From sequence record ON529860.1: a DNA stretch of 64,000 nucleotides; one strand, given 5' to 3'. Below the pieces are notes generated by a model that searched no databases, was not told where the DNA came from, and saw nothing but the letters and a program-made list of their open reading frames with translations. A program made the translations under genes and the position numbers. Below, piece by piece: positions 7,372-27,020 of the stretch. Within the stretch, counting starts at the first letter, position 1; the number at the start of each line of letters is the position of its first letter.

Positions 7372-7738
7372 GGGGTTGCTCCCGTTGATGTGCGGGCATA
7401 TTGCACGCCAAGGTCTTAACAACAAGTTAACGCCGCGTAGATTTTTCAGGGCGGGCGGTCGTTAAGGTTAATGCGAAAGACTCGCACAGGGCGGCGTTAA
7501 CCTTAACGGAATCGTCCGAAAAATTAACCATGCCCGTTGACGCTTTCTTAACGACTCGGCGCTAGGCTCAAGGGTTCCATAGCCACGCCTCGCGCCGGGT
7601 CCGACCCCCCGCGCGCGGTGTCACGCGCTCGCCTCATCCGGGGCGGGGCGCCCGGCCACGCGCCCCGACATCAGGAGGCGCGAGCCCGCCCGGCTGGGCG
7701 GTCGATCGGTCATGCCGGCGACCGCCAGGGCGGGGGTG

Positions 7739-7918
7739 CGTCGAATCGAAACGGCGTCAGGTCAAGTCGGCCGGCGTCGAAACGAAACGGCGTCAGGTCA
7801 AGTGCGTGCGCGTCGAATCGAAATGGCGTCAAGTCAAGTTCGCTTGCGTCAAATCGAAATGGCGTCAGGTCAAGTGCGCTTGCATCAAATCGAAACGGCG
7901 TCAGGTCAAGTGCGCGGG
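7739..7918. repeat. 5 x 36-bp tandem repeat (CGTCRAATCGAAAYGGCGTCARGTCAAGT...)
   Basis: Units start at 7739,7775,7811,7847,7883; no spacers. Confidence 0.95.
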
Positions 7919-8007
7919 CGTCAAGTTCGCCTGGGCGGGACGCGCCGACGCCCGGCGGGCGAATGCCGACCGGGCGTCTTTTGATCAGGCGGGAGCCCGA
8001 TGAATTC

Positions 8008-8214
8008 GAGTCACGGAACCTAAAAACAGAGTCCGATGAGCACGAGGGCGAAAACCATCTTCGACGCGCTACAGAGTTTATCGAGCATATTCAGGGGCTT
8101 CCTTCTACTACGGAGTCACGTCTGGTGGAAAACGTGACAGGGAACCGCCGGAGTCATCGTTGGGGGCTAAACTGACTCCGAATTGGAGTCACGTCTGGTG
8201 GAAAACGTGACTCC
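8008..8214. repeat. GAGTCACG motif cluster with GAGTCAC-N14-GTGACTC palindromes
   Basis: Copies at 8008,8113,8151,8186; perfect 10-bp inverted repeat at 8185-8214; 27-bp direct repeat at 8112/8185. Confidence 0.9.
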
Positions 8215-8226
8215 GGGGTTTCGGTT

Positions 8227-9210
8227 TCAGGCCTCGGCTTGGAGGACGACCGTGGCGGCGGTCGTGCGGCTGGCGAACTGCTCGCTCGCGATGTCCCCCT
8301 TCAGACCCTCAAAAGCCATGATGCTCGCCCGCAGGTCCGGGGCGATGTAGTCGGTCCCCTCAGCGGTCGCGTCCGCCTGAAACAGGTCCAGCAGGCGCGC
8401 CCGCACCCCGGCGGCGTCGTCCGCATAGAGGATCGGCGCACCCTCTTGCTCGGGCTCGATCCGATACGGGCGGCGCTCCAGCCTAAGGTCGAAGGGTCCG
8501 CTCCACGTCTTGACTTCGGGCGGCGCCAGAGCGGCGTCGATCAGGGAGTCGCAGAGGTCCTTCGACAGGTCAGCGCAGGCGTCGGCCTCATTCTGCGAGA
8601 CGTAGAAGGTGTGACGGGCCTCATCGACCGCCAAGGCGTGATCGGCCACCCAGGCCTGGCCTTGGAAGGTCGCGCGGTAGGGCAGGGTCTCGGGCGCCGG
8701 CTGGGCGGGCGCCGGGGGATCGCGGTCCAGCCAGTAGCGGTAGAGGGCAGCCCACGCCCGCGCGCGCTGACGGTCGCCCGTCGTGGGCAGGTAGGCGTCG
8801 TGCAGGGCCTCGGCGGCGGCGGTGCGATCCGGCGTGTCCGGATCGGCCTGATCCGCATCAAAGGCGTCGAAGGTCAGCAGGACGGCCTGCGTATGGCGGG
8901 CGGTCCACTCACCGGCAGGACCTGCCGCCAGAACCTCGCGCACCTCGGGGAGCGTCAGGTGGGAAAACCGGGCAGGGTCCCCGGCGATAAATTCCGAAGG
9001 GTCCCCGACCTGCGATTCGGCAGGGTCCCCGGTGATGAATTGCGCAGGGTCCCCGGCGATGGATTCGGCAGGGTCCCCCCGCTCGATTCCGTCCGCGATG
9101 ACGTAGAGCCGGCCGATCAGGCCTTGGGCGGCCTCCGGCGTGGGGTTGTGGCGCAGCGCCAGCACTTGGGCGGCGGCGGCGCGGATCAGGGCGGGATAGG
9201 TGGTGCTCAT
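8227..9210 (-). CDS. hypothetical protein, 327 aa, with 5 x 8-aa GDPxxxxx repeat
   Basis: AGGAG RBS, promoter at 9263; repeat encoded by 24-bp GGGTCCC units at 8975-9077. Confidence 0.75.
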   Translation of the reverse strand: MSTTYPALIRAAAAQVLALRHNPTPEAAQGLIGRLYVIADGIERGDPAESIAGDPAQFITGDPAESQVGDPSEFIAGDPARFSHLTLPEVREVLAAGPAGEWTARHTQAVLLTFDAFDADQADPDTPDRTAAAEALHDAYLPTTGDRQRARAWAALYRYWLDRDPPAPAQPAPETLPYRATFQGQAWVADHALAVDEARHTFYVSQNEADACADLSKDLCDSLIDAALAPPEVKTWSGPFDLRLERRPYRIEPEQEGAPILYADDAAGVRARLLDLFQADATAEGTDYIAPDLRASIMAFEGLKGDIASEQFASRTTAATVVLQAEA

Positions 9211-9396
9211 AGGGGCTCCTCTTGGAGGGAGATGGTCAGAGGTCCTGTCTAGCGGCCAATCGTTAACATCCGGTTAACAGGCCGCATTCGGGGCCGGCGC
9301 CGGCGTTCACCCGGCGTTAAGGTTAACGGCGGCCGGGCGACCCGAAAGCGCCCGCCGGGGGAGACAACCCGGCGGGCGCGGACCTGACGGTGGGCG

Positions 9397-9876
9397 TCAG
9401 GCGGTCGGGGACAGTTCGTCCTCGAAGGCGTCGTATTCGGCCCCGTCGTCGGTGCGGACCTGATACATGGGGCCGACCTCCGCGTCGGCTTCGTCCTCGG
9501 TCAGGGCGCGCACGACCTCGGCGGGCGTATCGGGCGGCGTCGTCGCGTCCGAACAGGTCGAGGTGAACAGGACGCGGGCGCCGGGCTCGAACGCAGGGGC
9601 CTGGGGTTCGGCGGCGTCGTCGTCGTTCGACGCCTGGAACTCCGCCGACGACCCGTCGATCGAGGTGCCGGGCCAGGACGCGCCGGGATCGGCCAGCATC
9701 GTCAGACAGCCGCTGATGTCGGGCTGGGCGCGGGTGCCGATATAATCGCGATAGGCGTCCGGTTCGCCGACCGGGGTTCCGGGGTTCTCGGCGTGGAAGC
9801 GTTGCAGGGCCGCGTCGAACAGTTGGCGGGGGTCGGTCACGTCGAGGGTGATGGTGATCTGGTAGGCGTCGCGCAT
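9397..9876 (-). CDS. hypothetical protein, 159 aa
   Basis: RBS, promoter at 9926. Confidence 0.8.
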   Translation of the reverse strand: MRDAYQITITLDVTDPRQLFDAALQRFHAENPGTPVGEPDAYRDYIGTRAQPDISGCLTMLADPGASWPGTSIDGSSAEFQASNDDDAAEPQAPAFEPGARVLFTSTCSDATTPPDTPAEVVRALTEDEADAEVGPMYQVRTDDGAEYDAFEDELSPTA

Positions 9877-9945
9877 GGGGCTCTCCCGGCTGGGGTGTCG
9901 ATGATCTGACCCTAGAGGACAGAAGTTAACAGGCGGTTAACGCGC

Positions 9946-10719
9946 TCAGGTATTGAGCGCGGGGACCGGGGCGAGGAGGCCGAACAGCGTGTTATAGTCG
10001 TCGCCCTCGGGTGCCTTCTCGGCCGCGTTCATCTTGGCGTCATAGTCCTGCATCGCCTCAGCGGTGCGGTCGTAGGCGTCCGCCTTGGCCTTGAGCGCGG
10101 CGAGGGCGGTGTTCCCCGTCGAGGCGAGCAGGGCGGCGCGGGCGGCGTCGGGCAGGGCGTCCCACGCCTGTTCATCCAGACCAAAGGCCCGCATGGCGCG
10201 GCTGGCGTCGTCGCGCTCGGCCTCGTCCAGTTCATCCACGCGGGCCTTCAACAGGTCGCGCTGTTCGGCGTCGGCCAGATTGGCGAGGATGAAGCGCAGG
10301 TCCTCATCCGAAATCCCGTTGCCGCGCAGGTAGGCGACGACGCGATCCCAGGCGGCGACCTCGGCCACCGCGTCGCGCGGTTGCAGGTCGAACAGGCGGG
10401 CGGCGTGGTTGTCGCTGGCCTCGGACAGCATGGCGATCAGGTCTTCCGCCGTGACGTCATTCAGCAGGGCGGTGGGGCGGGGCAGGGTCCGACCGTCCGT
10501 CACCTGGGTATCCCAGTTGATGGTCGGCGTTATCGTCAGTTCCGACATGGCGGTCCAGCCGTCTTGCAGGTCGGAGTCGCCTCTGAGGGCGGCCACGGCC
10601 TGTTGAACCGCCTCCTGCGGGGTCTCCGCTGTGACGGCGACCGTCTTGTGGGCGAAGAGGGTGGCGTAGGCCGTGACCAGATAGTTGGTCTGGACCGAAG
10701 ATCGGACGGGGCTGGACAT
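9946..10719 (-). CDS. hypothetical protein, 257 aa
   Basis: AGGAG RBS, promoter at 10764. Confidence 0.8.
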   Translation of the reverse strand: MSSPVRSSVQTNYLVTAYATLFAHKTVAVTAETPQEAVQQAVAALRGDSDLQDGWTAMSELTITPTINWDTQVTDGRTLPRPTALLNDVTAEDLIAMLSEASDNHAARLFDLQPRDAVAEVAAWDRVVAYLRGNGISDEDLRFILANLADAEQRDLLKARVDELDEAERDDASRAMRAFGLDEQAWDALPDAARAALLASTGNTALAALKAKADAYDRTAEAMQDYDAKMNAAEKAPEGDDYNTLFGLLAPVPALNT

Positions 10720-10864
10720 GGTGTCTCCTGTCGTTGCGTTGAGGCTGTTCTAGCGCCAATCTCTTAACAAAAAGTTAACGCCGGTCAACTCTTTTCGACG
10801 GCCCAGGTCCGTTAACCTTAATGCGCGTTGCTCGCAAAACGCCCGGCCGAAGCCGGGCGCTGCG

Positions 10865-11611
10865 TCACTTGACCGGGGGCAGGTTGCGCAGATCGACGGT
10901 CGGCGGGGCGCCGTCCTTGGCGACCTTGGCGGCTTGGAGGATCGACTCCATCAGGGTCTTGGTCGCCGTGCCGGCGCGCAGACGGGCCGCCGCATCGGTC
11001 GATTCGACGTCATCAGGGATGATGGTCGGCGCCGCCTTCAACGCCTCCAGACAGGCCTTCATCGCGGCTTTCGCGCCGAGGGTGGCTTGCGCCGCCGCCG
11101 TGCGAAGGGCGGCGGCGTAATCGCCCTGCTCTTCGTCCGCCATCTGCAAGAGACGGTCCTGCTCCTTCAGCAACCGCGCCGCCTCATGGGCGGTGATGGC
11201 GATGGCGTTGGGCAGGGCTTGGGCCTCCTTGGCGTAGAGGGTCAGCAGCCGGGCCGCCTCCTCGGCGTCTTCGGCATAGACGGCGCCGGCGTCCGACCAG
11301 TTGTTGACCAGCACCGCCATGGCGGCCTCGGCGGCATAGTGAGGCAGGGAGGAGCCGCTGCCGATGTCTTCCAGCTTCTGGCACAGGCGCAGGGTCAGGG
11401 GGTCGGTGTTCTGGGCCAGGGCGAGGGTCAGGAACTCAGGCTGGACCTGAAACTCCGTGACGCAACCGGCGTCGTCGTCCGCCGACAGGCCTTCGGCGTC
11501 CCTGTAGTTCTGAATGGCGAACTCCAGCGAGCGTCGCACATGGGCGGGGTCCACCGCGCCGCCTTCGATCTGCAAGCTGACGATGTAGTTGATGTTGACG
11601 GGTGCGGTCAT
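10865..11611 (-). CDS. hypothetical protein, 248 aa
   Basis: AGGAG RBS, promoter at 11657. Confidence 0.8.
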   Translation of the reverse strand: MTAPVNINYIVSLQIEGGAVDPAHVRRSLEFAIQNYRDAEGLSADDDAGCVTEFQVQPEFLTLALAQNTDPLTLRLCQKLEDIGSGSSLPHYAAEAAMAVLVNNWSDAGAVYAEDAEEAARLLTLYAKEAQALPNAIAITAHEAARLLKEQDRLLQMADEEQGDYAAALRTAAAQATLGAKAAMKACLEALKAAPTIIPDDVESTDAAARLRAGTATKTLMESILQAAKVAKDGAPPTVDLRNLPPVK

Positions 11612-11749
11612 CGGTGTCTCCTGATGTGGCGTTGATCCTGTCCTAGCACCGATTCGTTAACAACAAGTTAACGCCACACTGCGAAACGCTCGCGTTAACC
11701 TTAACGGCCGGCGCCCCGAAAACGCCCCGGCCGAAGCCGGGGCGCAGGA

Positions 11750-12070
11750 TCAGCAGACGGTGTTCGCGCCGACCGTTTCGGAGACGTGGGTGGGCTCCTC
11801 GTCTTCTTCGTCTTCATCGTCCGCCTCGGAAGGCTCCATGTCAGGATAGGTCGCGACCATTTCGCTGGCCCATTCGTCCACGGCGCCCACGGCGGCGGCC
11901 AGGTTGCCTTGCTCCCAGTTGTCCCGAACGGCGGTCGCCAGCAACACGCCCTCGGCGGCGTCCTGATAGAGGCTCAGCAGCAGGGCCGTGGACAGGGTGA
12001 CGGTCTTTTCGCCCGCCGCCATGGCGGCGTCGAGGACGGAGTCGATGGTCGGTTCAGCGGCGTCGGTCAT
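11750..12070 (-). CDS. hypothetical acidic protein, 106 aa
   Basis: RBS, promoter at 12115. Confidence 0.8.
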   Translation of the reverse strand: MTDAAEPTIDSVLDAAMAAGEKTVTLSTALLLSLYQDAAEGVLLATAVRDNWEQGNLAAAVGAVDEWASEMVATYPDMEPSEADDEDEEDEEPTHVSETVGANTVC

Positions 12071-12125
12071 GGGTGTCTCCCGGTGGTTGATGATCTGACC
12101 CTACAGGCCAGAGGTTAACAAGCGG

Positions 12126-12545
12126 TTAATGGGTGCGAAGTTCGGCGGTCGGCGTTTCGACGCCGTCCCTGTAGGCGATAGAGCCGAGGACGCCGAGGAT
12201 CGGGTTATAGTCGCCGCGCTCTTTCTCGGCGGCGTAGAAGCGTTCGAGAATGGTGGGCTGGGCGGCGAAGCGGTTGTTCCGCCGCAGGGGCGTCAGTTTC
12301 GGCGGCAGGCCGTCGAAGATGAACCAGCCGCGTTCATTCGTCGCGCCGCCCATCCAACGCCGCTTGCGGCTGATGTAGATTTCACGCTCGCCGTTGCCCG
12401 CCAGCAGCCAGACCGTTCGCCCTGGCAGGGCCAGCGACAGGTCGCGCAGGGCGTCGCGCATCATCTGTTCCGACAGGGCGACTAGGCGGATTTCCGCCGC
12501 CTCGACCGCTTCGAGGGCGACGACGAAGGGGTCGCGGCGGCTCAT
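12126..12545 (-). CDS. hypothetical protein, 139 aa
   Basis: ATGA coupling to upstream gene; stop inside CtrA box. Confidence 0.75.
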   Translation of the reverse strand: MSRRDPFVVALEAVEAAEIRLVALSEQMMRDALRDLSLALPGRTVWLLAGNGEREIYISRKRRWMGGATNERGWFIFDGLPPKLTPLRRNNRFAAQPTILERFYAAEKERGDYNPILGVLGSIAYRDGVETPTAELRTH

Positions 12546-13147
12546 GCGGCGACCTTGCGCGGGCGGGTCGCCAGATCGGGCACCGTATCCATGAAATCGA
12601 GATAGGCCAGAGCGCGGTCGGCGTCGGACAGGAATTCGGCGTAAACCTCGGGCTTCTCGCGCGGTGAGAGGATTTCACCCGCGACCAGACGTTGACGGTG
12701 CGCAACCAGCAGCGGGCGCGCCGCGTCCAGTTCAGCGCGCAACGTCGGGGCCTCGCGCAGTCCTGCCCGCACGAAGGCGATGTCGGGTTGATAGCCGGAG
12801 CCCCAGCCCGACCAGATCACGTCCGACCGATAGTCGCTGAACGACGGCGCAGGATCGACCTCGACACAGCGGGTTCCGTCCGGCAGCTTGTCGAGGGCGG
12901 CGCCGGTGAAGTGGTGAATCAGCGGGCCGATCCAGTTTCCCATCATCACGCCGTCGGCGGCGGCGGTTCCCCGGCCGGTCGAGACGGACCCGGCGGGCGT
13001 GACATCGACCCAGTTGGGGGCGTCATAGAGAATCTTGATCCTCAGGGTGTTCGTGGTGTGCTGGATCAGAAAATACTCGGTCCCGTCCGGGCCGACGATC
13101 TTGTGCGTCGGCTTGGACAGCTTGGCGCTCGGGGGCAGGAAGGCCAT
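12542..13147 (-). CDS. hypothetical protein, 201 aa
   Basis: AAGGAG RBS, promoter at 13189. Confidence 0.8.
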   Translation of the reverse strand: MAFLPPSAKLSKPTHKIVGPDGTEYFLIQHTTNTLRIKILYDAPNWVDVTPAGSVSTGRGTAAADGVMMGNWIGPLIHHFTGAALDKLPDGTRCVEVDPAPSFSDYRSDVIWSGWGSGYQPDIAFVRAGLREAPTLRAELDAARPLLVAHRQRLVAGEILSPREKPEVYAEFLSDADRALAYLDFMDTVPDLATRPRKVAA

Positions 13148-13288
13148 GAGGTGTCTCCTTTGTTCCTGATCGTTCTAGCAGGGATTCGTTAACAATAGGT
13201 TAACGCGGTGCGGAAAATGCGTCGGGCCGGCGTTAACCTTAACGCGCGCAGGTCGCAGAAAGGCCGGGGCGAACCCCGGCCTTGCGCG

Positions 13289-13981
13289 TCACTCTTTGGC
13301 GTGGCCCGCGTCGATCTTCACCGCCAGTTCGTCCATCCGGTCGGCCTTGTGGCGCAGCCAGTCGGCGGCGCGCTCGATGACCTCGACCATCGGCAGACGG
13401 TGAACCAGACCGGACGGGAACGACCCCGACAGGTTGTCCAGCAGCTTGATCGGCGGGACGTGACCGCAGGCGATATAGGCCGCTGCAAGGTGGTCGGTCA
13501 GGTTCATGCCGCCGCCGGTCAGGGCGATCTCATAGGTCACGTCGTCGGCGTTCGTGCCGACCTCGATCAGGGAGCAGGCCAGCCCCCAGGCGTCAAAGCG
13601 CGCGGCGATTTCCTTGAGCGCGTCGGAGTCTTCAAAGCGCAGATCGACCGGCCAGCCGAAATTCATCATCGGATCGAAGCTGGCGCGCCACTCGTCACCG
13701 CCGTCCGCCTGCCAAAAGGCCTCGCGCAGGTCTTCGTCCGTCACCGGGGCGTCGCCGTCCACGTCGTAGAGGGCCTTTTCCTTCGGGTAGTCCTCCCACA
13801 GATCGGCGGCGTATTGATCCACGGCCGAACGGCTCACGACCGGCAGCACCGCCTGCCAGCCGGATTCGCCGGTGTCCGCGTTGTAGAACTCCGACCAATC
13901 GCGCTCAATCGAGTCGTTGGTGATCGAGGCCAGCGAGAAGGTCGCGTCGGCGGCGATGGGGCGGGGGAAGGGGTTCGACAT
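13289..13981 (-). CDS. hypothetical protein, 230 aa
   Basis: AGGAGG RBS, promoter at 14034. Confidence 0.8.
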   Translation of the reverse strand: MSNPFPRPIAADATFSLASITNDSIERDWSEFYNADTGESGWQAVLPVVSRSAVDQYAADLWEDYPKEKALYDVDGDAPVTDEDLREAFWQADGGDEWRASFDPMMNFGWPVDLRFEDSDALKEIAARFDAWGLACSLIEVGTNADDVTYEIALTGGGMNLTDHLAAAYIACGHVPPIKLLDNLSGSFPSGLVHRLPMVEVIERAADWLRHKADRMDELAVKIDAGHAKE

Positions 13982-13997
13982 GGTGCCTCCTGATTGG

Positions 13998-14076
13998 CAT
14001 ATGATCATATGCTGAGAATATGCACCTAATGTCTTAACAAGAAGTTAAAATCAAGCAGCATATGGGTCATATGCTG
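13998..14076. promoter_or_regulatory. pair of palindromic operator-like sites (GCATATG-N2/N3-CATATGC) flanking a CtrA box
   Basis: GCATATGATCATATGC near 13998 and GCATATGGGTCATATGC near 14058. Confidence 0.55.
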
Positions 14077-14154
14077 GAGAAAAGTGGTTAACCCCTCGTT
14101 AAGGTTAACGCCCGCTCCGGGCAAAAGAAAACCCGGCCGAAGCCGGGTCTCTCG

Positions 14155-14865
14155 TCAGGGCTGATCTGGTTCGGCCCCATTCATGTGATCGACCGCCCCC
14201 GCCCAGGCCTCTTCCTCGCTGACGGCCCAGACCACTTCATCGCCCTCGGGGTCGATGGCGGTGAAGGGGAGCGGGTCGCCCTCCTTCTCGGAGAAGACGA
14301 CCTGATAGCCCGCCGCCGAGGCGGTGGTCTCGTTGTCGTCCTCGTCGTCTTCGCTGCTGAAGAGGCCGTCGCCCGCCAGCAGGTCGTCAATCGCCTGATT
14401 GCCGCGCTCGGACAGGATGTCTTCGATGCGGCGGGCGTTGTCTCGCAGCCAGCTTTCCGGGTCGTCGCCGCCGTAACGGTCGGTCAGGTCGTCGGTGGTG
14501 AAGACGACCGGCACGGCGCCGGCGGCGCGGATGGCCTCGGTCAGGGTATAGACATCGACCTCGGCCCAGGTCGGGTAGATGTCCGACTGGAAATCCACGC
14601 GGGCCTCGGCCAGCTTCACCGTCTCGTCATCGGTCAGGTCGGCCAGGGTTTCGATCTGGTCAAGCGGCTTGATCGTTTCGATGTCATGGTCGGTCAGGGC
14701 GTCGCGCAGGGATTCCGGGCTGGCGTCCACAGAGCCCAGCCGGTCGGCGGCGGCTTGCACCTGCGCCCGGATGGCGAGGGCTTGCGAGGCGAAGGGCGCG
14801 CCGTCAGGACTGGCGTCACGCGACTGATAGGAAAGCTGGAAAAGCTGGATGCGGGCGGTGGTCAT
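14155..14865 (-). CDS. hypothetical acidic protein, 236 aa
   Basis: RBS, promoter at 14916. Confidence 0.8.
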   Translation of the reverse strand: MTTARIQLFQLSYQSRDASPDGAPFASQALAIRAQVQAAADRLGSVDASPESLRDALTDHDIETIKPLDQIETLADLTDDETVKLAEARVDFQSDIYPTWAEVDVYTLTEAIRAAGAVPVVFTTDDLTDRYGGDDPESWLRDNARRIEDILSERGNQAIDDLLAGDGLFSSEDDEDDNETTASAAGYQVVFSEKEGDPLPFTAIDPEGDEVVWAVSEEEAWAGAVDHMNGAEPDQP

Positions 14866-14902
14866 GACGGGTGTCTCCCGGTGAATGTCGATGGACTGAC
14901 CC

Positions 14903-15034
14903 TAGCGGTCAGAGGTTAACAAGAGGTTAACCGATGGTGTAGCGGCGCCAGATTTGTTGCCCCAGCATGACGGCGAACACCGCCAGCATGACCAGCACGG
15001 TCACGACCAGGGTCCGGGGTCCGGGGCGGGCCAT
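14903..15034 (-). CDS. small single-TM peptide, 43 aa (MARPGPRTLVVTVLVMLAVFAVMLG...)
   Basis: ATG overlaps upstream stop; hydrophobic core; not in ORF track. Confidence 0.45.
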
Positions 15035-15498: not shown

Positions 15499-15657
15499 GA
15501 CGGGTGTCTCCTGTCGGATGGCGTTGAAGCCTGTCTAGCAGGAAAGTCTTAACAAGAAGTTAACGCCGGGCCAAGGGAAGATTTTAACTTATCGTTAAGG
15601 TTAACGGGCGGCGGTCGGGAAAGAAGCGCCCGGCGGTTAAGCCGGGCGTTCGAAGCG

Positions 15658-16967: not shown

Positions 16968-16969
16968 GG

Positions 16970-17941: not shown

Positions 17942-18004
17942 GGCGTCTCCTCCATGGGGTGATCTCGATTGAGACCACCCTACAGGCAAGAAGTTAACAA
18001 GAGG

Positions 18005-18487
18005 TTAATCGGCGGCGGAGACTTTGAGGTCCACCCCAAAGACGTGAACCAGTTCGCCGCTCGGCTTGCGCACGATCACGCCCAGCCACTGCTCCTCGAC
18101 AAAATAGCCCGTCACCTCGGCTTCGCCGATGCGATTGACGGCGACGCGCACGGTCGCGCCGACCTGGGGCGGTGAGTCCTCGCCGGACCACAGGACCGCG
18201 CCTTCGATGCCCGGCGGAAGCAGGCGGCCGTCTTTCCAGCGCGCCAGTTCATAGGCGGGCAGGTGCGGACGCCACAGGGGCGCATAGACATCCATCAGCC
18301 ACGACGGGCCGTAGGTGTTGCGGATCGCGCGCAGGAGATTGCCCGCGTCCTCCTGCGTGTCGCCGCCGGTGGCCCACAGGACGGTCAGATGCTCTTTCCA
18401 ACCGCCTTCGACCTTGGCGTATTTGTCGGCGAAGTTCAGCAGGGCGGCGGACGCCTCGGGCGTCAGGGCGGGGTAGGTGTCAGGCAT
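18005..18487 (-). CDS. hypothetical protein, 160 aa
   Basis: RBS, promoter at 18531; stop inside CtrA box. Confidence 0.8.
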   Translation of the reverse strand: MPDTYPALTPEASAALLNFADKYAKVEGGWKEHLTVLWATGGDTQEDAGNLLRAIRNTYGPSWLMDVYAPLWRPHLPAYELARWKDGRLLPPGIEGAVLWSGEDSPPQVGATVRVAVNRIGEAEVTGYFVEEQWLGVIVRKPSGELVHVFGVDLKVSAAD

Positions 18488-19106: not shown

Positions 19107-19264
19107 GGGGCGTCTCCTCCCGGTTGATCCTAGCGACCATAGGGCCGAATCGTTAACAATAGGTTAACGCCGCGCGACTTAATTCGCTGTTAAGGTTAAC
19201 GGCCGGCGCTAGGGAAAGGCGCGCCACCGGGGGAGACAACCCGGCGGCGCGACAGGCGGCGGCC

Positions 19265-19825
19265 TCAGACGTCGAAGTCGCCGTATTGCGTCCCGCACTG
19301 GACGATTTCGCCGGTGGCGTCATCCCAGTGGATGCGGTTCAGGCGCAGCTTGTTGCCGGTGCGGGCGTGGGTCCATTCCACCTGACAGGTGATCATGTCG
19401 TCGAAGATCGCCGAGGGCTCGCCGTATTGCGACCAGTCCACGCCGCCCCGGTCGTCAACCTGCTGCTTGGCGTCGGACAGGATGCGGGCCAGCACCTCGG
19501 GCATCAGGCGGCCGGGCGCCTTCTTGAGGCCGTAGGCGCCGCGTCCGTTGTTCGCCATATTGCTGAAGTTGCTGAAGTCCTGCGTGTAGTTCTCGACCTC
19601 GACCGACCCCGGCTGGGGCAGGTCATACATGAGGTCCGACAGCATGTCGCCGACCGTATAGGTCTCGGTGGCGGCGTCCAGCTTGTCGGCCAATTCGGCG
19701 CCCTCGTCGCCCGGCTGGACATAGAGTTCGGCGCCGTCAGCGCGGCGCGCCAGGACGCCGCCCATCGAATCACGCCACGCCTTGAACGCGCCGTCATCGC
19801 TTTCCCAGGTGGGGGCCTTGCTCAT
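19265..19825 (-). CDS. hypothetical protein, 186 aa
   Basis: ATGA coupling, GAGGAGG RBS. Confidence 0.8.
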   Translation of the reverse strand: MSKAPTWESDDGAFKAWRDSMGGVLARRADGAELYVQPGDEGAELADKLDAATETYTVGDMLSDLMYDLPQPGSVEVENYTQDFSNFSNMANNGRGAYGLKKAPGRLMPEVLARILSDAKQQVDDRGGVDWSQYGEPSAIFDDMITCQVEWTHARTGNKLRLNRIHWDDATGEIVQCGTQYGDFDV

Positions 19826-20238
19826 GCCTCGGCCTCCTCTTCGACTTCGGCATAGGCGCTGGGGATGCGCTTGTTCGTGTGGTCGCAGAACAGATCAGGG
19901 TCCTCATAGTTGATCTGGACGCTGTCGAGGCGCCAGCCGGTCGAGGCGTCGTGCAGGTGGTCGTCACAGACCAGCGTGAAGTTCGCCTGCACCGCGTCGA
20001 ACGACAGGGCGACGCCGTCGCGGGTGGCGAAATAGAGCGGATAGCCGCCGAGGTCCGTGTAAGGCCCGGCGCGCAGCGCGGCCTTGACCTGCTGAAGCGC
20101 CTTGACCGGATCGGCGTCGAAGCGGGCGGCCGAACCCTTATAGGCGGCGCGCAGCGGCTTGGCGGTTCCCCAGCCGGGCTGGCGGGTGTCGTAGAGGGCG
20201 CCATCGGACGAGGCGAAAAGGTGGGCGGGCAATGTCAT
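19822..20238 (-). CDS. conserved phage hypothetical protein, 138 aa (GGYPLYF...DLFCDHT motif)
   Basis: RBS, promoter at 20284. Confidence 0.8.
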   Translation of the reverse strand: MTLPAHLFASSDGALYDTRQPGWGTAKPLRAAYKGSAARFDADPVKALQQVKAALRAGPYTDLGGYPLYFATRDGVALSFDAVQANFTLVCDDHLHDASTGWRLDSVQINYEDPDLFCDHTNKRIPSAYAEVEEEAEA

Positions 20239-20401
20239 GGGGTCTCCTCCCGTTGCTGACCCTCCCTGTATCGCATGAAGTTCTTAACAACAAGTTAACG
20301 CCGCGTTTTATTTCCGGCGGCGGGCGTTAACCTTAACGCGCTGTTAAGGTTAACGCGAGCCGGTCGCAGGAAAACGCCCGGCCGAAGCCGGGCGCTTGTG
20401 T

Positions 20402-20812
20402 TCAGCCCTCGCCCGCTTCCCAGAGCGCGACGCCGCAGCCGTAGCCCAGGGCGTAGGCCGCGTAACGGGCCGTGCCGGATTCGTATTTCGGTCGGCCGAA
20501 CCAGTCGTTATGTCGCGCCATGTCTTTAGGCGCGGCATGGGAGGCGTCCCGCCCTTCACCGAAAATCATCGCCAGCAGGTAATAGTCGTCGTCGGGGGTC
20601 GTCGCGCAGGCGGCGACGATCAGGTCGTAGAACTTGCGGGACAGACCTTTCATCAGGGGGAACTCAGGGATCAGCGCGACGGTGGTCGTGCGGTAGCGGG
20701 TGTGACCCTGGTCCCAGCGGTAGGCCTCGGCCGATCCGCTTTCGTAGGGGTTGTCCCACCAGTTGACGCCTGCACGGGCGGCGGCGAGGCCTTCGCGCCA
20801 GATCGGGTCCAT
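20402..20812 (-). CDS. hypothetical protein, 136 aa
   Basis: Coupled ORF, hairpin after stop. Confidence 0.75.
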   Translation of the reverse strand: MDPIWREGLAAARAGVNWWDNPYESGSAEAYRWDQGHTRYRTTTVALIPEFPLMKGLSRKFYDLIVAACATTPDDDYYLLAMIFGEGRDASHAAPKDMARHNDWFGRPKYESGTARYAAYALGYGCGVALWEAGEG

Positions 20813-21057
20813 CAGGCGCCGATCCGGTGGGCCGGGCAGAAGCCCGTCACGACCTTGACGCGACCGCGCTTGAAGCCGGGGCGCAGGGCGCGCGCCGAGC
20901 GTTCGGCGTCGGCGGTCTTCATGTGACCGCAGGCGCAGGACGCGCCGGGGTCGCGGGTCTGGGCCTCGCGCACCTTGTCGGCGCCGGCCTGTGTGCCGAG
21001 CCAGCCGCAGAAGGGCTCGCCGCCGACCGTGATGTGAGCGGGTTGGGTGTTCGTCAT
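20812..21057 (-). CDS. hypothetical Cys-containing protein, 81 aa
   Basis: AGGAGG RBS. Confidence 0.7.
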   Translation of the reverse strand: MTNTQPAHITVGGEPFCGWLGTQAGADKVREAQTRDPGASCACGHMKTADAERSARALRPGFKRGRVKVVTGFCPAHRIGA

Positions 21058-21066
21058 CGGGGCCTC

Positions 21067-21264
21067 CTATAGGTTCAGGGCGGCGTCGAACGCCTGGGAT
21101 TGCAGTTTCTTGGCGGCTTCGGCCTCGGCGGGGTAGAGCCGGGCCAGGCCGTCAAAGCGTTCTTTCTGATGCGAGCGCTCGCCCTCGGCGGCGGTCATAT
21201 GCATGACCTCGCCCCACAGGTGGGCCATTTCGAGGATCAGGACAGAGCGGCGGGAAGCGTTCAT
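21067..21264 (-). CDS. hypothetical protein, 65 aa
   Basis: AAGGAG RBS, promoter at 21306. Confidence 0.7.
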   Translation of the reverse strand: MNASRRSVLILEMAHLWGEVMHMTAAEGERSHQKERFDGLARLYPAEAEAAKKLQSQAFDAALNL

Positions 21265-21316
21265 GGCGGTCTCCTTGTTGACCTCGCCACCCTAGCAGAG
21301 AGGTCTTAACAAGAGG

Positions 21317-21793
21317 TTAACAGCGGCGAAGCATTTCGCGCATCAGGGCTTCCTCGTTGCGGGCGATGTCCAGCGCGGCGCGGTCGTGGCCTTGCTCATG
21401 CGCCTGCTTGGCCTGCTGTCGGCAGATGTCCTGGCGCTTGCGGATGTCGGCCTCCGACAGGGTGCGGAACAGGGCGTCGGCCTCCTGATCGACCTTGACG
21501 GTCCAGTGCTGCTGCGATTCGTCGTCGGCGCGGAGATGGGCGGGGAAGTAGAGGTCCGCCACGTCCTGTGCGAAGAACGACCCGTCGTTGCCGATCTTGA
21601 GCAGTTCGGCCTCGACCTCGACCGGCGCGATCTCTTCGGCGGCGACGACCGTATAGGCGCCGATCCCGTCGCCGTCGGTGATGAAGTGGGCGATGTCCGC
21701 CAGCGTCATGTCCGCGACCAGCCGCTCGGCGGCGGCGGTGTCGGCGGCGTGATACACGACCAGGGAGAGTGTCGTCTTGATGATCTTGGGCAT
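21317..21793 (-). CDS. hypothetical protein, 158 aa
   Basis: AAGGAG RBS, promoter at 21835; stop inside CtrA box. Confidence 0.8.
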   Translation of the reverse strand: MPKIIKTTLSLVVYHAADTAAAERLVADMTLADIAHFITDGDGIGAYTVVAAEEIAPVEVEAELLKIGNDGSFFAQDVADLYFPAHLRADDESQQHWTVKVDQEADALFRTLSEADIRKRQDICRQQAKQAHEQGHDRAALDIARNEEALMREMLRRC

Positions 21794-21927
21794 GGGGTCT
21801 CCTTTGCGACTGATCCTGTTCTAGCAGTGATTCGTTAACAAGAGGTTAACGCGGCGCGCGGTAGTCCGGGGCGTTAACCTTAACAGGGTCAGGCCGGAAA
21901 ACGCCCCGGCCGAAGCCGGGGCGCGGT

Positions 21928-22818
21928 TCAGCCGATCCGCTCCTTCTTGAGGTGGTAGGACCGTCCGTGGGTCATCAGGGTGCGGAACCCGCCCAACCGG
22001 GTCTCGCCCGGCGCTGGGCTGACGACATAGACCGGATCAAGGAAGTCGTCGTTCCAGCGGATCACGTCGTCGAACGACTGGGGCGTATGCAGCACGACCT
22101 TATAGGGTTCGCCCTCGGGCGCGACCAGATCGGTGGTGTGGTCCTCGTCGCCCCTGTAACCGAACACCGACAGGACCGCGACCGGCAGGCCGTCGTCAAG
22201 CGTCGTGAGGTCTTGCAGGGCGCGGGCCTCGGCCAGCCGCTGATGCGGTTCATAGAGGGCGCAGTCGCGCTTGAGCAGATCGGCGCGCAAGGCGACGACG
22301 CGCTGGGGCGTCAGGTCCAGAGCCGCGCAGGCCCCGATGACGACGCCGTAGATGAAGCCGAGTTCGTGCTGCGTGAGTGACACCATGCCGTCCATTCCCG
22401 CCGTCGCGACCTCCTGATTTTTCAGGCCGAACGCCGCCAGGGCGCCGGCGACGTCGCGGCACTCCTGCCGGGTCGGGGCGGTCTTGGACTCGATGTGAAG
22501 GCGCAGGGTTTCGCGGGCCTTCATCAGGTCCACAATCGCCAGCGACAGGCCGGTGTAGCGGCCGTCTTCGACCGGGGCGGGCTTGGGCTTCGGGGCCGGG
22601 TAGGTCTCGACGCACAGCAGGCGGGCGCGGGTTTCCTCGACCGTATAGACCTCGACCTGATAGGTCATGCCAAGCGCCGCGCGTAGTTCGTTGCGGATCG
22701 CCAGACCGGCTTCGGGGTCGGTGGTGGTCAGGCGCAGTTCGCCGATCCGGCGGTCCTCGCCCTTGGCGGGGTGGCGGCGCGACAGTTCAAGGCGCAGGTC
22801 GTAGGGGGCGTCTGTCAT
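21928..22818 (-). CDS. hypothetical protein, 296 aa
   Basis: RBS, promoter at 22861. Confidence 0.8.
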   Translation of the reverse strand: MTDAPYDLRLELSRRHPAKGEDRRIGELRLTTTDPEAGLAIRNELRAALGMTYQVEVYTVEETRARLLCVETYPAPKPKPAPVEDGRYTGLSLAIVDLMKARETLRLHIESKTAPTRQECRDVAGALAAFGLKNQEVATAGMDGMVSLTQHELGFIYGVVIGACAALDLTPQRVVALRADLLKRDCALYEPHQRLAEARALQDLTTLDDGLPVAVLSVFGYRGDEDHTTDLVAPEGEPYKVVLHTPQSFDDVIRWNDDFLDPVYVVSPAPGETRLGGFRTLMTHGRSYHLKKERIG

Positions 22819-22871
22819 CGGTGTCTCCCGTGGTTGAGCGTCTGGTGTAGCCGAGATTCGTTAACAAGAGG

Positions 22872-23063
22872 TTAACGCGGCGTGTTTTTCTCGATCCAGG
22901 TTTCGGCGGCGCGGCGCGTCTGGCGCATGGCGGCGAAGGTGTGGCGCACCTTCCCGTCCGGTCCCGGCGGCGGCACGAACTCGCCCGCGCTGACGATGGC
23001 GTAGTAGGGGCCGTGACCGGAGAAGAAGTCGTAGTATTCGACGACGCGGTGCGGGGGTTCCAT
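22872..23063 (-). CDS. hypothetical protein, 63 aa
   Basis: AAGGAGG RBS; stop inside CtrA box. Confidence 0.7.
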   Translation of the reverse strand: MEPPHRVVEYYDFFSGHGPYYAIVSAGEFVPPPGPDGKVRHTFAAMRQTRRAAETWIEKNTPR

Positions 23064-23098
23064 CGGGCCTCCTTGGCAGGGGTTGTGTCGGGCTGGGC

Positions 23099-23458
23099 TC
23101 AGCTTAGGCGGGCGAGGATTTCGTCGTTCGTCATGGTGTCCATCAGGGCCTGGACCCGCTGGGCCTTTTCATCCTCGACCGCCTGGGCCGCCGTCTTGGC
23201 GCGGCGATGCTCGGCCAGCGCCGCCTTGCCGGCCTCGGTGGTCTCCGGGTCGATGGTCATGTAAAGGCTGACCTCGCGGCCCTGACGGTCCACGAAGGTC
23301 AGGCTTCCAGACGGCCGCACCTTGACGGTGAAGTGATGCTTGACCAGACGCTCGGCGGTCTCCTGACCGAAGTCGCCGCCGAAGCAGCCGCCCGCCGCCT
23401 TGACGGTGTTGTCGCTCTTGAGCCGGGTGTGATAGCCGATGTTCTTATGGGCGTGCAT
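23099..23458 (-). CDS. hypothetical protein, 119 aa
   Basis: AAGGAG RBS before MHAHKNIG. Confidence 0.75.
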   Translation of the reverse strand: MHAHKNIGYHTRLKSDNTVKAAGGCFGGDFGQETAERLVKHHFTVKVRPSGSLTFVDRQGREVSLYMTIDPETTEAGKAALAEHRRAKTAAQAVEDEKAQRVQALMDTMTNDEILARLS

Positions 23459-23468
23459 GGGGCGCTCC

Positions 23469-23807
23469 TTAGAAGGGAATGTCGTCGTCGAACGACGGGG
23501 GCGGGGCGTAGGTCTGGGCGGCGCGCGCGCGGCGGGCGGCGTCCATCTCGGCGCGCTCCTCGTCCGTCGCGCTCCAATACTCGTCGTCTTCCGGGTGGGC
23601 GCCGGGCTCGCCGCGATAGTGCGGGTTCTTGACCCACGCATCCAGCGGATGCAGCAGCCATTCCTGATCCGGGACCTCGCGGCCTTCCGTGTGCGCGAAG
23701 CCCGACACGGCCAGGCTCATGTATTCGCCCTGGCTCAGCGACTCCATCGCCAGAGCGTCTTCCTTTTCGCGGCGGGCCTCTTCGGCCATTTCGATCACAT
23801 CGCGCAT
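23469..23807 (-). CDS. hypothetical acidic protein, 112 aa
   Basis: AAGGAG RBS, promoter at 23849. Confidence 0.75.
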   Translation of the reverse strand: MRDVIEMAEEARREKEDALAMESLSQGEYMSLAVSGFAHTEGREVPDQEWLLHPLDAWVKNPHYRGEPGAHPEDDEYWSATDEERAEMDAARRARAAQTYAPPPSFDDDIPF

Positions 23808-23983
23808 CGGCGTCTCTCCTTGTGAGCCCCCTTTATGCCAGACAGAAGTTAACAACAAGTTAACGCCGACGCTTTTCTGCATTTTCTTCGGGCGGCGGCT
23901 GCGGGCGTTAACCTTAACGGCGTGTTAAGGTTAACGGTCGGGGTCCAGCCTGGGAAACGGCGTCCCGGAACGGGACGCCTCTC

Positions 23984-24052
23984 CTAGAAGGTGAGCAGGA
24001 TGACCAGCAGGGCCAGAAAGAGGCGGGAGGCGCCGGCCAGCTTGTCGATCAA
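23984..24052 (-). CDS. small single-TM peptide, 22 aa (MIDKLAGASRLFLALLVILLTF)
   Basis: TTG overlaps upstream TGA; hairpin follows. Confidence 0.5.
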   Translation of the reverse strand: MIDKLAGASRLFLALLVILLTF

Positions 24053-24519
24053 GTCGCGTTGTCCGCCTTCATCGCCGCGCACAGGGTCTCGACCAGCCGC
24101 TTGTGGCGCGCCAGAGCGGCGGGGTCCGTGCGGTCGCCTTGGAAGGGGACCAGCACCAGAGGTGTGGCCGAGGGGTCCAGCGCCCAGAAGATTTCCGTCT
24201 CGCCGTCCGTCATCTGGTAGGTGAAGACGTTCAGGTCGGCTGGGGCGTGGTCGAGGAAATAGACGCGTCCGTTGAACCGGGCGTTGAAGGGCTGTTCCGG
24301 CGTCGCCAAGTCGATCTCAGCCAGCACGGCGTCGCGCACGGCGTCAATCGGGTGGACGCCGTCTTCGCTGGTTTCATCAGGACGGGATTCGGCCTCGGCC
24401 TCCGCGTCGCGCTTGATGTCCTCGACCACGGCGGCGCGCGCCTCCTCCCAAGTCGCGCTGGCGCTGGGCTCCTCGTCGGGCATGAAGCCCGAGACGTTCG
24501 ATCCGGTCACATAAGGCAT
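24049..24519 (-). CDS. hypothetical protein, 156 aa
   Basis: RBS, promoter at 24567. Confidence 0.75.
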   Translation of the reverse strand: MPYVTGSNVSGFMPDEEPSASATWEEARAAVVEDIKRDAEAEAESRPDETSEDGVHPIDAVRDAVLAEIDLATPEQPFNARFNGRVYFLDHAPADLNVFTYQMTDGETEIFWALDPSATPLVLVPFQGDRTDPAALARHKRLVETLCAAMKADNAT

Positions 24520-24671
24520 CGGGGTCTCCCTTGTTGATGCGAGGCTGCAATCTACCCGACGAGGTCTTAACAAAAAGTTAACAGCGACGCAATCGCTTTT
24601 CTTCGCGGCGTTAACCTCTTGTTAACTTCTTCGTGGGATAAGGGACAGGTCAACAACACAGGAGATCGCCG

Positions 24672-24917
24672 ATGGGCGAAGTCATCCCGCACCGCGTCTG
24701 GCGCAACACCCGGACCGAACGCACCGCTGGCGTGTTCGGCGCCGTGCCTTGGGTCTCGGACGCGGAGAAGCATGAATGGGAACTGGTCACGGTCGGCTGG
24801 ACCGTCCGCCACCCGGACGGCACGACCGGGGTCGGCCGCTTCGCCTTCCAGACGAAGGACGAGGCGCAGGCTTGGGTCGATAAGAATCCCAACTTCCCCG
24901 GCATGAGCCAAGGCTAG
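24672..24917 (+). CDS. hypothetical protein, 81 aa
   Basis: AGGAG RBS; inverted copy of the CtrA promoter at 24611; hairpin after stop. Confidence 0.8.
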   Translation: MGEVIPHRVWRNTRTERTAGVFGAVPWVSDAEKHEWELVTVGWTVRHPDGTTGVGRFAFQTKDEAQAWVDKNPNFPGMSQG

Positions 24918-25167
24918 TCACAGGGGCGTCGGTCGCAAGGCCGGCGCCCTTCGTTGTTGCGACCCGCTCGCGTTAACCTTAACAGAGCGTTAACCTTAAT
25001 GCCCCTGCCCGCTCTAGGGGTATGACCGGGTATGACCAGGTCATACCGGGGCGGATTCCCGCTGAAAATCACCCGAATTTGCCGAATTGCGCTCGAAATC
25101 GCCGGATTTTGACCCTAAATCACTGTTTTTACTAGATTTTTCGGGTTTTCTGGCGGTCCAGAGGCCG

Positions 25168-25320
25168 TTAACCTTAACGGGGCGTTAACCTTAACGCGGT
25201 TTTGGTTAACGGGGCATTAACCTTAACGCCTGGATGGTTAACGAGGCGTTAACCTTAACGCGGTGATGGTTAACGGGCCGTTTACCTTGACGGCGGGAGG
25301 GTTAACGGCCCCAGGGTTAA
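25168..25320. repeat. dense TTAA half-site array, 32-bp period (TTAA-N7-TTAA-N2-TTAA-N11)
   Basis: N7 pairs start at 25174,25206,25238,25270. Confidence 0.9.
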
Positions 25321-25329
25321 TCGGGGCGG

Positions 25330-25533
25330 CGTCAAATCGCGCTCCCGTCAAATTCGGCCGGCGTCAAATCGAAACGGCGTCAAGTCAAATCTGTCGCGTT
25401 GAAGCGCGCTCGCGTCAAATCGGCCGATCGTCAAATCGCGCTCGCGTCAAATCCAGATCGCGTCAAATTCGCGGGGCGTCAAATCGCGCTCCCGTCAAAT
25501 CGATCGCGCGTCAAATCGGCGAGGCGTCAAGTC
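25330..25533. repeat. 16-bp-period CGTCAAAT array (about 13 units)
   Basis: GTCAA(A/G)T at 25331,25347,25363,25379 then 25414,25430,25446,25462,25478,25494,25510,25526; includes one copy of the 36-bp unit from 7.7 kb. Confidence 0.95.
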
Positions 25534-25766
25534 GACCGGGCGGCCTGAAGCGGGCCGGCGTCCAGTCGGGCTGCCAGGGCGCGCCCGAGCGGGCTTGCGC
25601 GGCGCTCCGCCTCCCAGGGAGGACACCTGGAAGAAACGGCCTGAAGCGCGCCCTGGCGCCTCTTTCTAACCTGAGCCGGGGCAGGGTCAAGCCGAACAGG
25701 GTCGAGAAGGCCGTTTTCCGGGCCGTGGAGCGCCCTGGCGCGGGCGGGGCGACCGCAGGGCCGCTG

Positions 25767-26216
25767 GAGTCACGAAACCCATCCACGGGCCGGAAAACCA
25801 GCCAGGACGGGCGATTGTCAGTCACGATACCCACCATCTGTGACTCTGCCGGGATTTTTGTCAGTCACGAAACCCGGAGGCGGGCTTCGCCGGCGATCCT
25901 GGCGCCCAGGCGGATCAGTGTCAGCGGTTGTGTCAATGCGGGACACAATAAGGCGGGATTAGGGCGAAATGGGATTTCAGGGCGGAGTCACGTTTGCCGA
26001 AACGGGCGCTCGGGACTTCTGTTGATTTCATTGAGGTTTTTCGCCGGAGCCGGGCGTTTTGGAGTCACGATTGCCGTTGTGCGGTGCAGCAATGCGCCGG
26101 ATTTGAGCGGGTCCAGGCGGGGCGAAACAGAGTCACGTTTTCCTAAGCTGTTGGGTTCATTACGCTTTTTAGGGTGGGCCAGCACCTGAGTCACGTTTGA
26201 CACGAACGATGACTCC
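25767..26216. repeat. GAGTCACGWWWNCC motif cluster
   Basis: Copies near 25767,25820,25863,25985,26062,26130,26188; two form N14 palindromes. Confidence 0.85.
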
Positions 26217-26295
26217 GTCAGCCGAGGCGCAAAAACAGGCAAAATCACAGTAAAATCAGTGATTTAGGGGCGTTTTTCGGGATTTAGGGGTGAAA

Positions 26296-26478
26296 TTAGC
26301 GGCGATTCCGGTGAAATCGGTCGATGGCGGTGTCGTGAGGGGCTTGCCGCCCGTCAAAACGCCCTGCACGCTCCCGATGACGCCGTTTGCGCTCCCAGGG
26401 ACCGGGCCAGATGATCTGGACGGTCCAGACCAGCAGCAGGAGGAACACAAAGGCCCCCATGACGATCGCTACCCACAT
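26296..26478 (-). CDS. small membrane protein, 60 aa
   Basis: GGAGAG RBS; N-terminal TM helix, basic tail. Confidence 0.55.
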   Translation of the reverse strand: MWVAIVMGAFVFLLLLVWTVQIIWPGPWERKRRHRERAGRFDGRQAPHDTAIDRFHRNRR

Positions 26479-26509
26479 CGCGCGCTCTCCGTGACCTGGT
26501 GAATGACCA

Positions 26510-26714
26510 GGGTCCCCGCCGGATGAATCTGGAGGGTCCCCCGACCGAAAATTCGCCAGGGTCCCTGGACGAAAAATTCCAAAGGGTCCCCGGCCGTTAA
26601 TTCAGCAGGGTCCCCCGGTCGAAAAATCCCGAGGGGTCCCCGCGTTGAATTCGCCAGGGTCCCTGGGCGATGAATCCAGACGGGTCCCCGGTCCAGAAAA
26701 TCCGGAAGGGTCCC
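26510..26714. repeat. 9 x about 25-bp AATT/AATC...AGGGTCCC array
   Basis: GGGTCCC at 26510,26534,26559,26584,26608,26634,26657,26682,26708. Confidence 0.95.
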
Positions 26715-27020
26715 CGCAGGCTATCACGGTCGGGCCGGCGCCGCCATGGGCGCGCGGCGTTAACCTTAATGGCGCGTTAACCATGCCTGTTAAGGTTAAC
26801 GCGGGGCCGGCCGCCGTTAACCCTCTGATCGTTAAGGTTAATGCCGCCGGGTGGCTGGCGCGAGATCGTTGACAGGGGACTCAGTTGGTCTGTCGCACTT
26901 ATGACACAGTCCGAGGGCGCCGTTGTCTGTCAACAAATCGCGTCTGGAATGCGCTTCCAGCGGAGCCCCGATTTTGAACCCTCTCCTATTCTTTCATGGA
27001 TCATATCCCAACATCCAAAG

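Follow-up and report, generated by a model that had tools for sequence, protein, structure and literature searches.

Repeat Cassettes Near terL in Phage Papperlapapp

Brevundimonas phage vB_BpoS-Papperlapapp (ON529860.1; 356,874 bp) belongs to the subfamily Dolichocephalovirinae and was deposited as a circular genome, and its source paper reports no genome-end analysis. The stretch studied here, called the window, comprises 64,000 nucleotides, bases 62,001–126,000 of the record; coordinates below are window coordinates (record coordinate minus 62,000) unless the record or another phage is named. Minus-strand genes fill the window from 1 to about 34 kb, among them terL (27076–29874, minus strand, 932 aa) and terS, which encodes the terminase small subunit (30040–30729, minus strand; phrog_11494, E 5.5e-63). 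The subject of this report is a group of composite repeat cassettes in this region, A and B inside the window and a partial cassette C outside it, and their relation to the ends of a predicted direct terminal repeat (DTR).

Cassette B adjoins terL, as a preliminary description of the window had stated: terL stops at 27076, and the cassette occupies 24.97–26.84 kb. Cassettes A and C are not terL-adjacent. At its inner edge, B has a palindromic GGTATGACC/GGTCATACC block (25018–25050) and an A/T-tract region (25060–25150), together spanning 25018–25150. This palindromic block, lying beside a CtrA-box array, may be a fifth module of the cassette; “taccgggta” palindromes of similar appearance also occur in the cassettes of phages phiCbK and CcrColossus (hereafter Colossus). 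The CtrA-box array itself is dense, with 4.2 units of 32 bp (25166–25308, plus strand), and holds full boxes, in the form TTAA-N7-TTAA given in PMC4285127, at 25174, 25206, and 25238. It is followed by an iteron-like array of the motif GCGTCAAAT(C), in which a 16-bp unit is repeated 12–13 times (25329–25534, plus strand), and by a cluster of seven (G)AGTCACG motifs (25767–26216, plus strand) with one exact GTCAC-N14-GTGAC inverted repeat at 25821–25844. The module nearest to terL is a non-coding array of nine GGGTCCC words (GGGACCC on the other strand) at 26510–26714 on the plus strand; its unit is AGGGTCCCC and then a GAAAATTC-like tract, with a spacing of 23–26 bp. Between this array and terL lies one more CtrA-box block (26759–26841), which contains the last full CtrA box of a 37-kb block.

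Two open reading frames (ORFs) overlap or interrupt B. The annotated plus-strand ORF PAPPERLAPAPP_01620 (25263–26189) spans the B arrays and is probably not a gene, because its G+C content is flat over the three codon positions (GC1/2/3) and it is unannotated in four close relatives. A small ORF of 60 aa with a hydrophobic N-terminus (26296–26478, minus strand) sits between the AGTCACG cluster and the GGGTCCC array, in a position conserved in relatives; its product has no similarity to phiCbK gp001 and no Pfam or PHROG family match. Tiny hydrophobic ORFs (24–60 aa) without mutual sequence similarity recur in the cassettes between inverted repeats and arrays, one of them in a metagenomic A-type cassette (Logan contig L020, 11100–11200).

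Cassette A repeats the scheme. Its iteron-like array, GCGTCRAAT...GCGTCAGGTCAAGT (GCGTCRAAT/GTCAAGT), has 5.1 units of 36 bp (7738–7922, plus strand) and is kept in phages Domovoi, Kabachok, Bambus, Marchewka, and Gurke. The (G)AGTCACG cluster (8008–8216, plus strand) carries GAGTCACG at 8008, 8113, and 8186 with an inverted copy at 8206, and includes two GTCAC-N14-GTGAC inverted repeats (8115–8138 and 8188–8211), a structure also present in phiCbK, Gurke, and one metagenomic relative. Most AGTCACG units contain a GANTC site; among the genes of Papperlapapp are also three for DNA methylases and one for a GcrA-like cell-cycle regulator (record 203,000 and 292,900–312,400). The GGGTCCC array of A consists of five words at an exact spacing of 24 bp (8975–9077, feature span 8972–9078, plus strand). 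Promoter-type CtrA-box blocks, which are generic and not cassette-specific, stand to the left of A (7416–7550) and at 9260–9330, upstream of the gene that contains this array.

The partial cassette C is found at record 56,980–58,300 (window about −5,020 to −3,700), 12.8 kb beyond A. It consists of a GCGTCAGGTCAAG array, two genes, and then three GGGTCCC words directly upstream of a CtrA-box promoter; the AGTCACG cluster is absent. A, B, and C share strand and module order, A keeping three modules and C two.

The motif cores, that is AGGGTCCCC with its GAAAATTC-like tract, CGTCAAAT, and (G)AGTCACG, hardly differ from unit to unit, and the spacers vary. Every array reported in the preliminary description is present. 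The clustering is far beyond chance: counts in a single 250/500-bp interval reach 9, 13, and 7, and none of 200 dinucleotide-preserving shuffles exceeds 3. The common order and strand of A and B, with offsets of 17.5–17.8 kb between matching parts, were likewise recovered. Within the window, as the preliminary description stated, the three arrays without TTAA are confined to A and B. In a scan of the whole 357-kb genome, GGGTCCC arrays, GTCAART arrays, and N14 inverted repeats occur at A, B, and C and nowhere else. An apparent avoidance of GGGWCCC between A and B was not significant at the genome-wide density of about 1.15 per 10 kb. Elsewhere in the window, at 35756–35900, there are two overlapping tandem repeats (43 bp × 2.3 and 25 bp × 3.1) of an unrelated motif.

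A Repeat Array Within a Coding Region

The GGGTCCC array of A lies inside gene PAPPERLAPAPP_01330 (8227–9210, minus strand, 327 aa), where it is read as five in-frame 8-residue GDPxxFxx repeats. The product has no Pfam or PHROG match. The G+C content at third codon positions (GC3) is 0.90, 0.73, and 0.86, and the coding signature flanks the array on both sides; this signature is absent at B. Within the array, Pro is always encoded by CCT and Gly always by GGG, and elsewhere in the gene Pro is CCC or CCG, a pattern seen in six phages. The copy number among relatives ranges from 5 to 7 and changes by whole 24-bp units. In a metagenomic homologue with 47% protein identity, the GGGTCCC words are spaced at 23, 25, and 24 bp, and one unit is shifted in frame, giving GTL instead of GDP. 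This codon choice, the whole-unit changes in copy number, and the retention of the word in a shifted frame show that selection acts at the DNA level; the conserved entity in the array is the DNA word and not the peptide. Gene 01330 is a clear example of a DNA signal that dictates codon choice and outlasts a frame change.

Tandem duplication was considered as the source of A, B, and C and rejected, with only one weak paralogue pair among 59 ORFs, no terL remnant in the repeat interior, and no mutual similarity of the three loci beyond the arrays. A and C could also be leftovers of earlier duplications at the left end of the repeat, decaying and functionless today, and the restriction of A/B/C mutual similarity to the arrays, as well as the loss of the AGTCACG cluster from C, would fit such decay. 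Nevertheless, we hold this to be highly improbable, since six phages, as well as metagenomic relatives, retain A, its motif cores unchanged and its rare codons forced, and since the gene sets that follow B, A, and C are not paralogous and include no remnant of terL.

The Cassette in Related Phages

Over its full length, Papperlapapp TerL shares 55% identity with its intein-containing counterpart in Colossus, in line with the earlier assignment of this DNA to the phiCbK group, whose members have long DTRs. A low-identity insert covers about residues 150–497 of the Papperlapapp protein, which otherwise aligns end to end with Colossus TerL. Because the end-to-end alignment with an intein-containing protein includes this insert, Papperlapapp TerL very probably carries an intein that is unannotated in the record.

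Both A and B are present in all five close relatives and in the more distant Gurke, with an A-B spacing of 17.5 kb in Papperlapapp and 20.8 kb in Gurke. The module order of B, namely CtrA boxes, GGGACCC array, GTCAC-type inverted repeats with A/T tracts, iteron-like array, and CtrA-box array, recurs directly after terL in Colossus, CcrPW, phiCbK, and the Sphingobium phage Lacusarx. The carriers, Lacusarx in particular, otherwise have next to no DNA identity with one another. In Colossus, the cassette covers bases 100–1790, with the GGGACCC array at 355–494, the CtrA-box array at 1560–1790, and the iteron-like motif GACGCCATT. The phiCbK cassette covers 788–2110, with the corresponding arrays at 853–980 and 1920–2110 and the iteron-like motif TTTTGACGC. 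Lacusarx has its GGGACCC array at 766–870, its CtrA-box array at 1800–2000, and the iteron-like motif GCCATTTT, and the GGGACCC array of CcrPW is at 418–543. Phage C1 has three GGGACCC words (1119–1171) near the left end of its record, the array being the one module looked at there. GGGACCC is invariant across the cassette-bearing phages and the iteron-like motif is phage-specific. B is the orthologue of the terL-adjacent cassette of the phiCbK supergroup, and this cassette is far older than the group formed by Papperlapapp, its close relatives, and Gurke.

Several deposited sequences break off within or near the arrays. The Kabachok record (ON529852.1) is linearized within the GGGTCCC array of B, the Logan contigs L020 and L021 both end at the same base inside an ACTTGAC array, and the Domovoi record appears to start near C, as far as match coordinates tell. 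These break points were tried as genome termini and rejected, being explained by repeat-induced assembly breaks; the Logan contigs and the Kabachok record indicate that the arrays break short-read assemblies.

The arrays are not described in the study of the phiCbK-like phages by Gill et al. (2012; PMC3556154). Full-text literature searches, whose scope did not extend to papers on giant Caulobacter phages in subscription journals, returned no packaging signal, origin, or end-defining sequence for the phiCbK supergroup.

CtrA Boxes Around the Cassettes

The preliminary description counted TTAA blocks among the parts of each cassette, which does not hold. Blocks of GTTAAC/TTAA-N7-TTAA occur in nearly all intergenic gaps from 468 to 26832, and since they are found in nearly every gap, they are not a specific part of A. 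They are ordinary CtrA-box promoter elements by analogy with published ones, with CtrA binding predicted here. CtrA boxes are enriched in the DTRs of Alphaproteobacteria phages, where they occupy intergenic gaps, and two box-bearing promoters of phiCbK have been demonstrated to be bound and activated by CtrA~P (Mascolo et al., 2022; PMC9437464). The boxes described in that work are the same as the TTAA “parts” of A and B, whereas the GGGACCC, AGTCACG, and iteron-like arrays are not treated in it. Papperlapapp differs from the published pattern in that some of its boxes are, in addition, packed densely in tandem along the cassette's inner edge, and among the CtrA-box elements only this 32-bp array of B is unusual.

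The cassettes stand among CtrA-box promoters, and they could be operator or enhancer clusters through which phage or host regulators turn the CtrA-dependent early genes within the repeat on or off. The two CtrA-bound and CtrA-activated phiCbK promoters would agree with this, as would the three GGGACCC words of C directly upstream of a CtrA-box promoter and the resemblance of the N14 inverted repeats to the sites of dimeric regulators. However, the position of the array is inconsistent, upstream of a promoter in C, inside a gene in A, and on the downstream side of the boxes in B, and control of transcription would not account for the strict adjacency to terL across genera; we give this explanation a low probability. 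Promoter and terminator scans gave no signal above shuffles.

Ends and Predicted Extent of the Terminal Repeat

The ends of phiCbK were mapped by tag ligation, the left one to terL codon 652 and the right one to position 10,287 in a non-coding gap, and the repeat ends of Colossus were deduced from coverage (Gill et al., 2012; PMC3556154). The left end of Colossus is 95 bp past the terL stop. In CcrPW, the annotated left end is 35 bp past the terL stop, exactly at a lone GGGGACCC unit. All three left ends (ligation-mapped and inside terL in phiCbK, from coverage in Colossus, annotated in CcrPW) fall on the terL side of the whole cassette, and the B-type cassette lies 0.1–2.1 kb inside the mapped or annotated repeat end. 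In every relative with known ends the left cut is thus outside the cassette, which gives no support to the earlier proposal of cuts between the GAGTCACG and GGGTCCC arrays. A comparison of Colossus and CcrPW with Papperlapapp and Gurke gave no usable conservation of a shared cut sequence at the left end. In Papperlapapp, the left repeat end would be expected, by analogy with Colossus and CcrPW, in the spacer after terL (26842–27075), which contains a terminator-like hairpin.

The right ends share a different mark. At their right ends, phiCbK, Colossus, and CcrPW each have a single copy of an element of the form GGGACCCAARGSC...TTAACCATTTTT. The mapped or annotated right end is about 44 bp past a GGGACCC word in phiCbK, CcrPW, and C1; in C1, the word is GGGACCCAAGGCC, 44 bp before the repeat end. 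Within the first 30 kb of CcrPW, GGGACCC is confined to the array, position 2, and two sites, 18359 and 18477, on either side of the annotated end at 18404.

Neither A nor any other part of the window contains the right-end element. Its homologue in Papperlapapp is at record about 51,415–51,480, on the minus strand as expected, 19 kb beyond A. In a database-wide search, it matched CcrPW 18338–18404 with 86.8% identity (E 5e-12), and the similarity ends exactly at the annotated repeat end of CcrPW. The element is common to all seven giant Brevundimonas phages and is syntenic with that of Colossus, just before the peptidase and portal genes. The distribution of CtrA boxes gives a second line of evidence. 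All full boxes lie inside the DTR in CcrPW (14/14), phiCbK (3/3), and Colossus (12/12). In Papperlapapp, the 48 full boxes of the window are all at or before 26766, and all 67 of those in record 16–176 kb fall in 51,829–88,766; used as a proxy for DTR extent, this block predicts a repeat of about 37 kb. Because of the right-end element at record about 51,415 and the confinement of the boxes between it and terL, the DTR of Papperlapapp most likely measures about 37.5 kb and runs from the terL spacer (window about 26.85–27.08 kb) to record about 51,415 (window about −10,585). A, B, and C would then all lie inside one long DTR, with A internal, which is the most likely arrangement on this homology. 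Capsid length was also compared with DNA content, but head lengths give 0.97–1.09 kb/nm for either repeat length and do not discriminate.

In the preliminary description, A and B were instead placed at the two ends of a repeat of about 17.5–18 kb, with their arrays as recognition sites for the two cuts. For B this was partly right, as it is homologous to the left-end cassette of relatives. A and B are 17.5 kb apart (20.8 kb in Gurke), a distance near the length of the 16.7–18.4 kb repeats of Colossus and CcrPW, GGGACCC arrays are present at both loci while the word flanks the repeat ends of relatives, and an 18.8-kb metagenomic contig ends in an A-type array. However, the right-end element is missing at A and present 19 kb further, the block of CtrA boxes runs unbroken through A, there is a third cassette, and the homologue of the Colossus in-repeat gene gp027 sits beyond A. 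Furthermore, the left cut of relatives is outside the cassette and not between arrays, and the ends of metagenomic contigs are explained by tandem repeats breaking assemblies. We consider it improbable that A and B bound the repeat.

Like the phiCbK-like DTR phages (Gill et al., 2012; PMC3556154), Papperlapapp has homologous TerS and TerL, a predicted repeat that starts at or just after terL and is rich in small genes of unassigned function, and a conserved right-end element. It differs from them in the predicted length of its DTR, about 37.5 kb versus 10–17 kb, and in the two extra cassettes that would lie inside it.

Putative Functions of the Cassettes

We tentatively favor, at a little under an even chance, the reading that A, B, and C are copies of a DNA-level protein-binding cassette in which GGGACCC is read by the packaging machinery and the other modules bind other proteins. 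B would be the ancestral copy, placed directly after terS-terL and just inside the left DTR end throughout the phiCbK supergroup, and A and the partial C would be additional internal copies that only the giant Brevundimonas phages carry. The protein that reads GGGACCC would probably be TerS. The phased array beside terL may load the terminase, with a cut on the terL side starting packaging, and the single GGGACCC word in the right-end element may place the terminal cut about 44 bp onward. The fast-evolving iteron-like array, the GTCAC-N14-GTGAC repeats, and the dense CtrA-box array would be bound by a protein specific to the phage, a dimeric protein, and the CtrA of the host, respectively, and these proteins could link the DTR end to replication or to the control of early genes. 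The data show how the cassettes are built, that they are conserved between phage genera, that the motif is selected as DNA, that the right-end element has a homologue, and how far the CtrA-box block reaches; both the DTR limits and the identities of the site-binding proteins are what we infer from sequence comparison.

Known packaging systems offer partial parallels. In T7-group phages, repeat arrays stand beside the terminal repeat, and TerS proteins of the SPP1/SF6 type act on multi-box pac sites. The cassettes resemble both in that phased short repeats adjoin the packaging cut and the terminase genes, and they differ in their motifs, in their much greater length (1.7–1.9 kb), and in a variable cut-to-array distance, with binding here predicted. 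The TerS of phiCbK has HHpred similarity to PDB 3zqp (Gill et al., 2012; PMC3556154). With the lambda-type cos site (cosQ/cosN/cosB), to which A and B had been likened, the cassettes share only the idea of a multi-part packaging site beside terminase genes; the long repeats of relatives are blunt-mapped and not cohesive-ended, and their mapped or annotated left cut is outside the cassette. It also speaks indirectly against a cos site that the phages with the homologous TerL have long DTRs. No nicking-like site was found between the arrays, although no cos-specific scan was made.

Several points weigh against a role in packaging. The DTR limits of Papperlapapp come solely from homology, and those of CcrPW and C1, which their depositors annotated, may have been derived in the same way. 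Anything from 35 to 850 bp separates the left cut from the array, and no GGGACCC is near the left cut of phiCbK, which falls inside terL; therefore, the array cannot position the cut directly. The internal arrays of A and C would compete as sites for loading the terminase. C1, with a DTR of 24.7 kb, manages with a single cassette, which leaves the extra copies in Papperlapapp unexplained. The pairing of TerS with the GGGACCC word is one that we infer, and the iterons, A/T tracts, and CtrA boxes also fit an origin of replication.

The last point leads to another explanation, related to the paired replication origins that the preliminary description had named as an alternative. In it, each cassette is an origin- or centromere-like module for replication or maintenance, with phage-specific iterons, A/T-rich tracts for unwinding, and a dense CtrA-box array that silences it as long as CtrA is active; it would serve lytic replication or episomal carriage, and its adjacency to terL would be incidental. 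Iteron origins of plasmids and phage-plasmids have tandem direct repeats with replicon-specific motifs and A/T-rich tracts. The cassettes share these traits, together with arrays flanking a gene: tandem iterons are accompanied by an A/T-rich tract, A/T tracts flank the arrays, and the motif of the direct-repeat array changes from phage to phage as iterons do. Their 4–8 tandem CtrA boxes are comparable to the five CtrA sites of the Caulobacter origin, and several copies in the same orientation are easier to tolerate for an origin than for packaging sites. Dolichocephalovirinae have moreover been reported as episomes, with an origin postulated by the authors of that report, which would agree with such a role.

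The cassettes nevertheless differ from iteron-type origins in lacking a recognized initiator gene, DnaA boxes, and any switch of skew. Two known binding sites, the DnaA box and the W-box, were considered and rejected: no DnaA-box cluster exists in A or B, and the core GGGTCCCC(G/C) differs from the published W-box TCCCCA. There is no adjacent initiator-like gene, the neighboring ORFs having no Pfam or PHROG family, and the sign of the GC skew is unchanged across A and B. Nor would an origin account for the GGGACCC words that relatives carry at their repeat ends. We regard this origin-type role as possible but doubtful. A more specific version, in which the cassettes are CtrA-gated replication and segregation modules whose phage-specific iterons and centromere-like arrays are silenced by the tandem CtrA-box array until swarmer differentiation, seems rather unlikely to us.

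Implications

The concentration of CtrA boxes in terminal repeats is known already. No description of the arrays, or of an end-defining sequence for the phiCbK supergroup, was found in searchable papers. The cassette is conserved from Sphingobium to Caulobacter and Brevundimonas phages, the DNA word GGGACCC is a mark of both repeat ends as well as of the cassette proximal to terL, and the right-end element is conserved.

If the cassettes were origins, they would bear on the persistence of the episomes and on their coupling to the CtrA cell cycle. If they were CtrA-gated modules, they would represent the long-sought cis element for the episomal persistence of Dolichocephalovirinae, with replication timed to the host cell cycle, and the Brevundimonas giants, with two or three modules per terminal repeat, would carry four to six per virion DNA. 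Together, the cassette, the word, and the right-end element predict a repeat of about 37.5 kb for seven giant-phage genomes deposited as “circular,” and such a repeat would alter their stated genome architecture and the size of the packaged DNA (about 394 kb).

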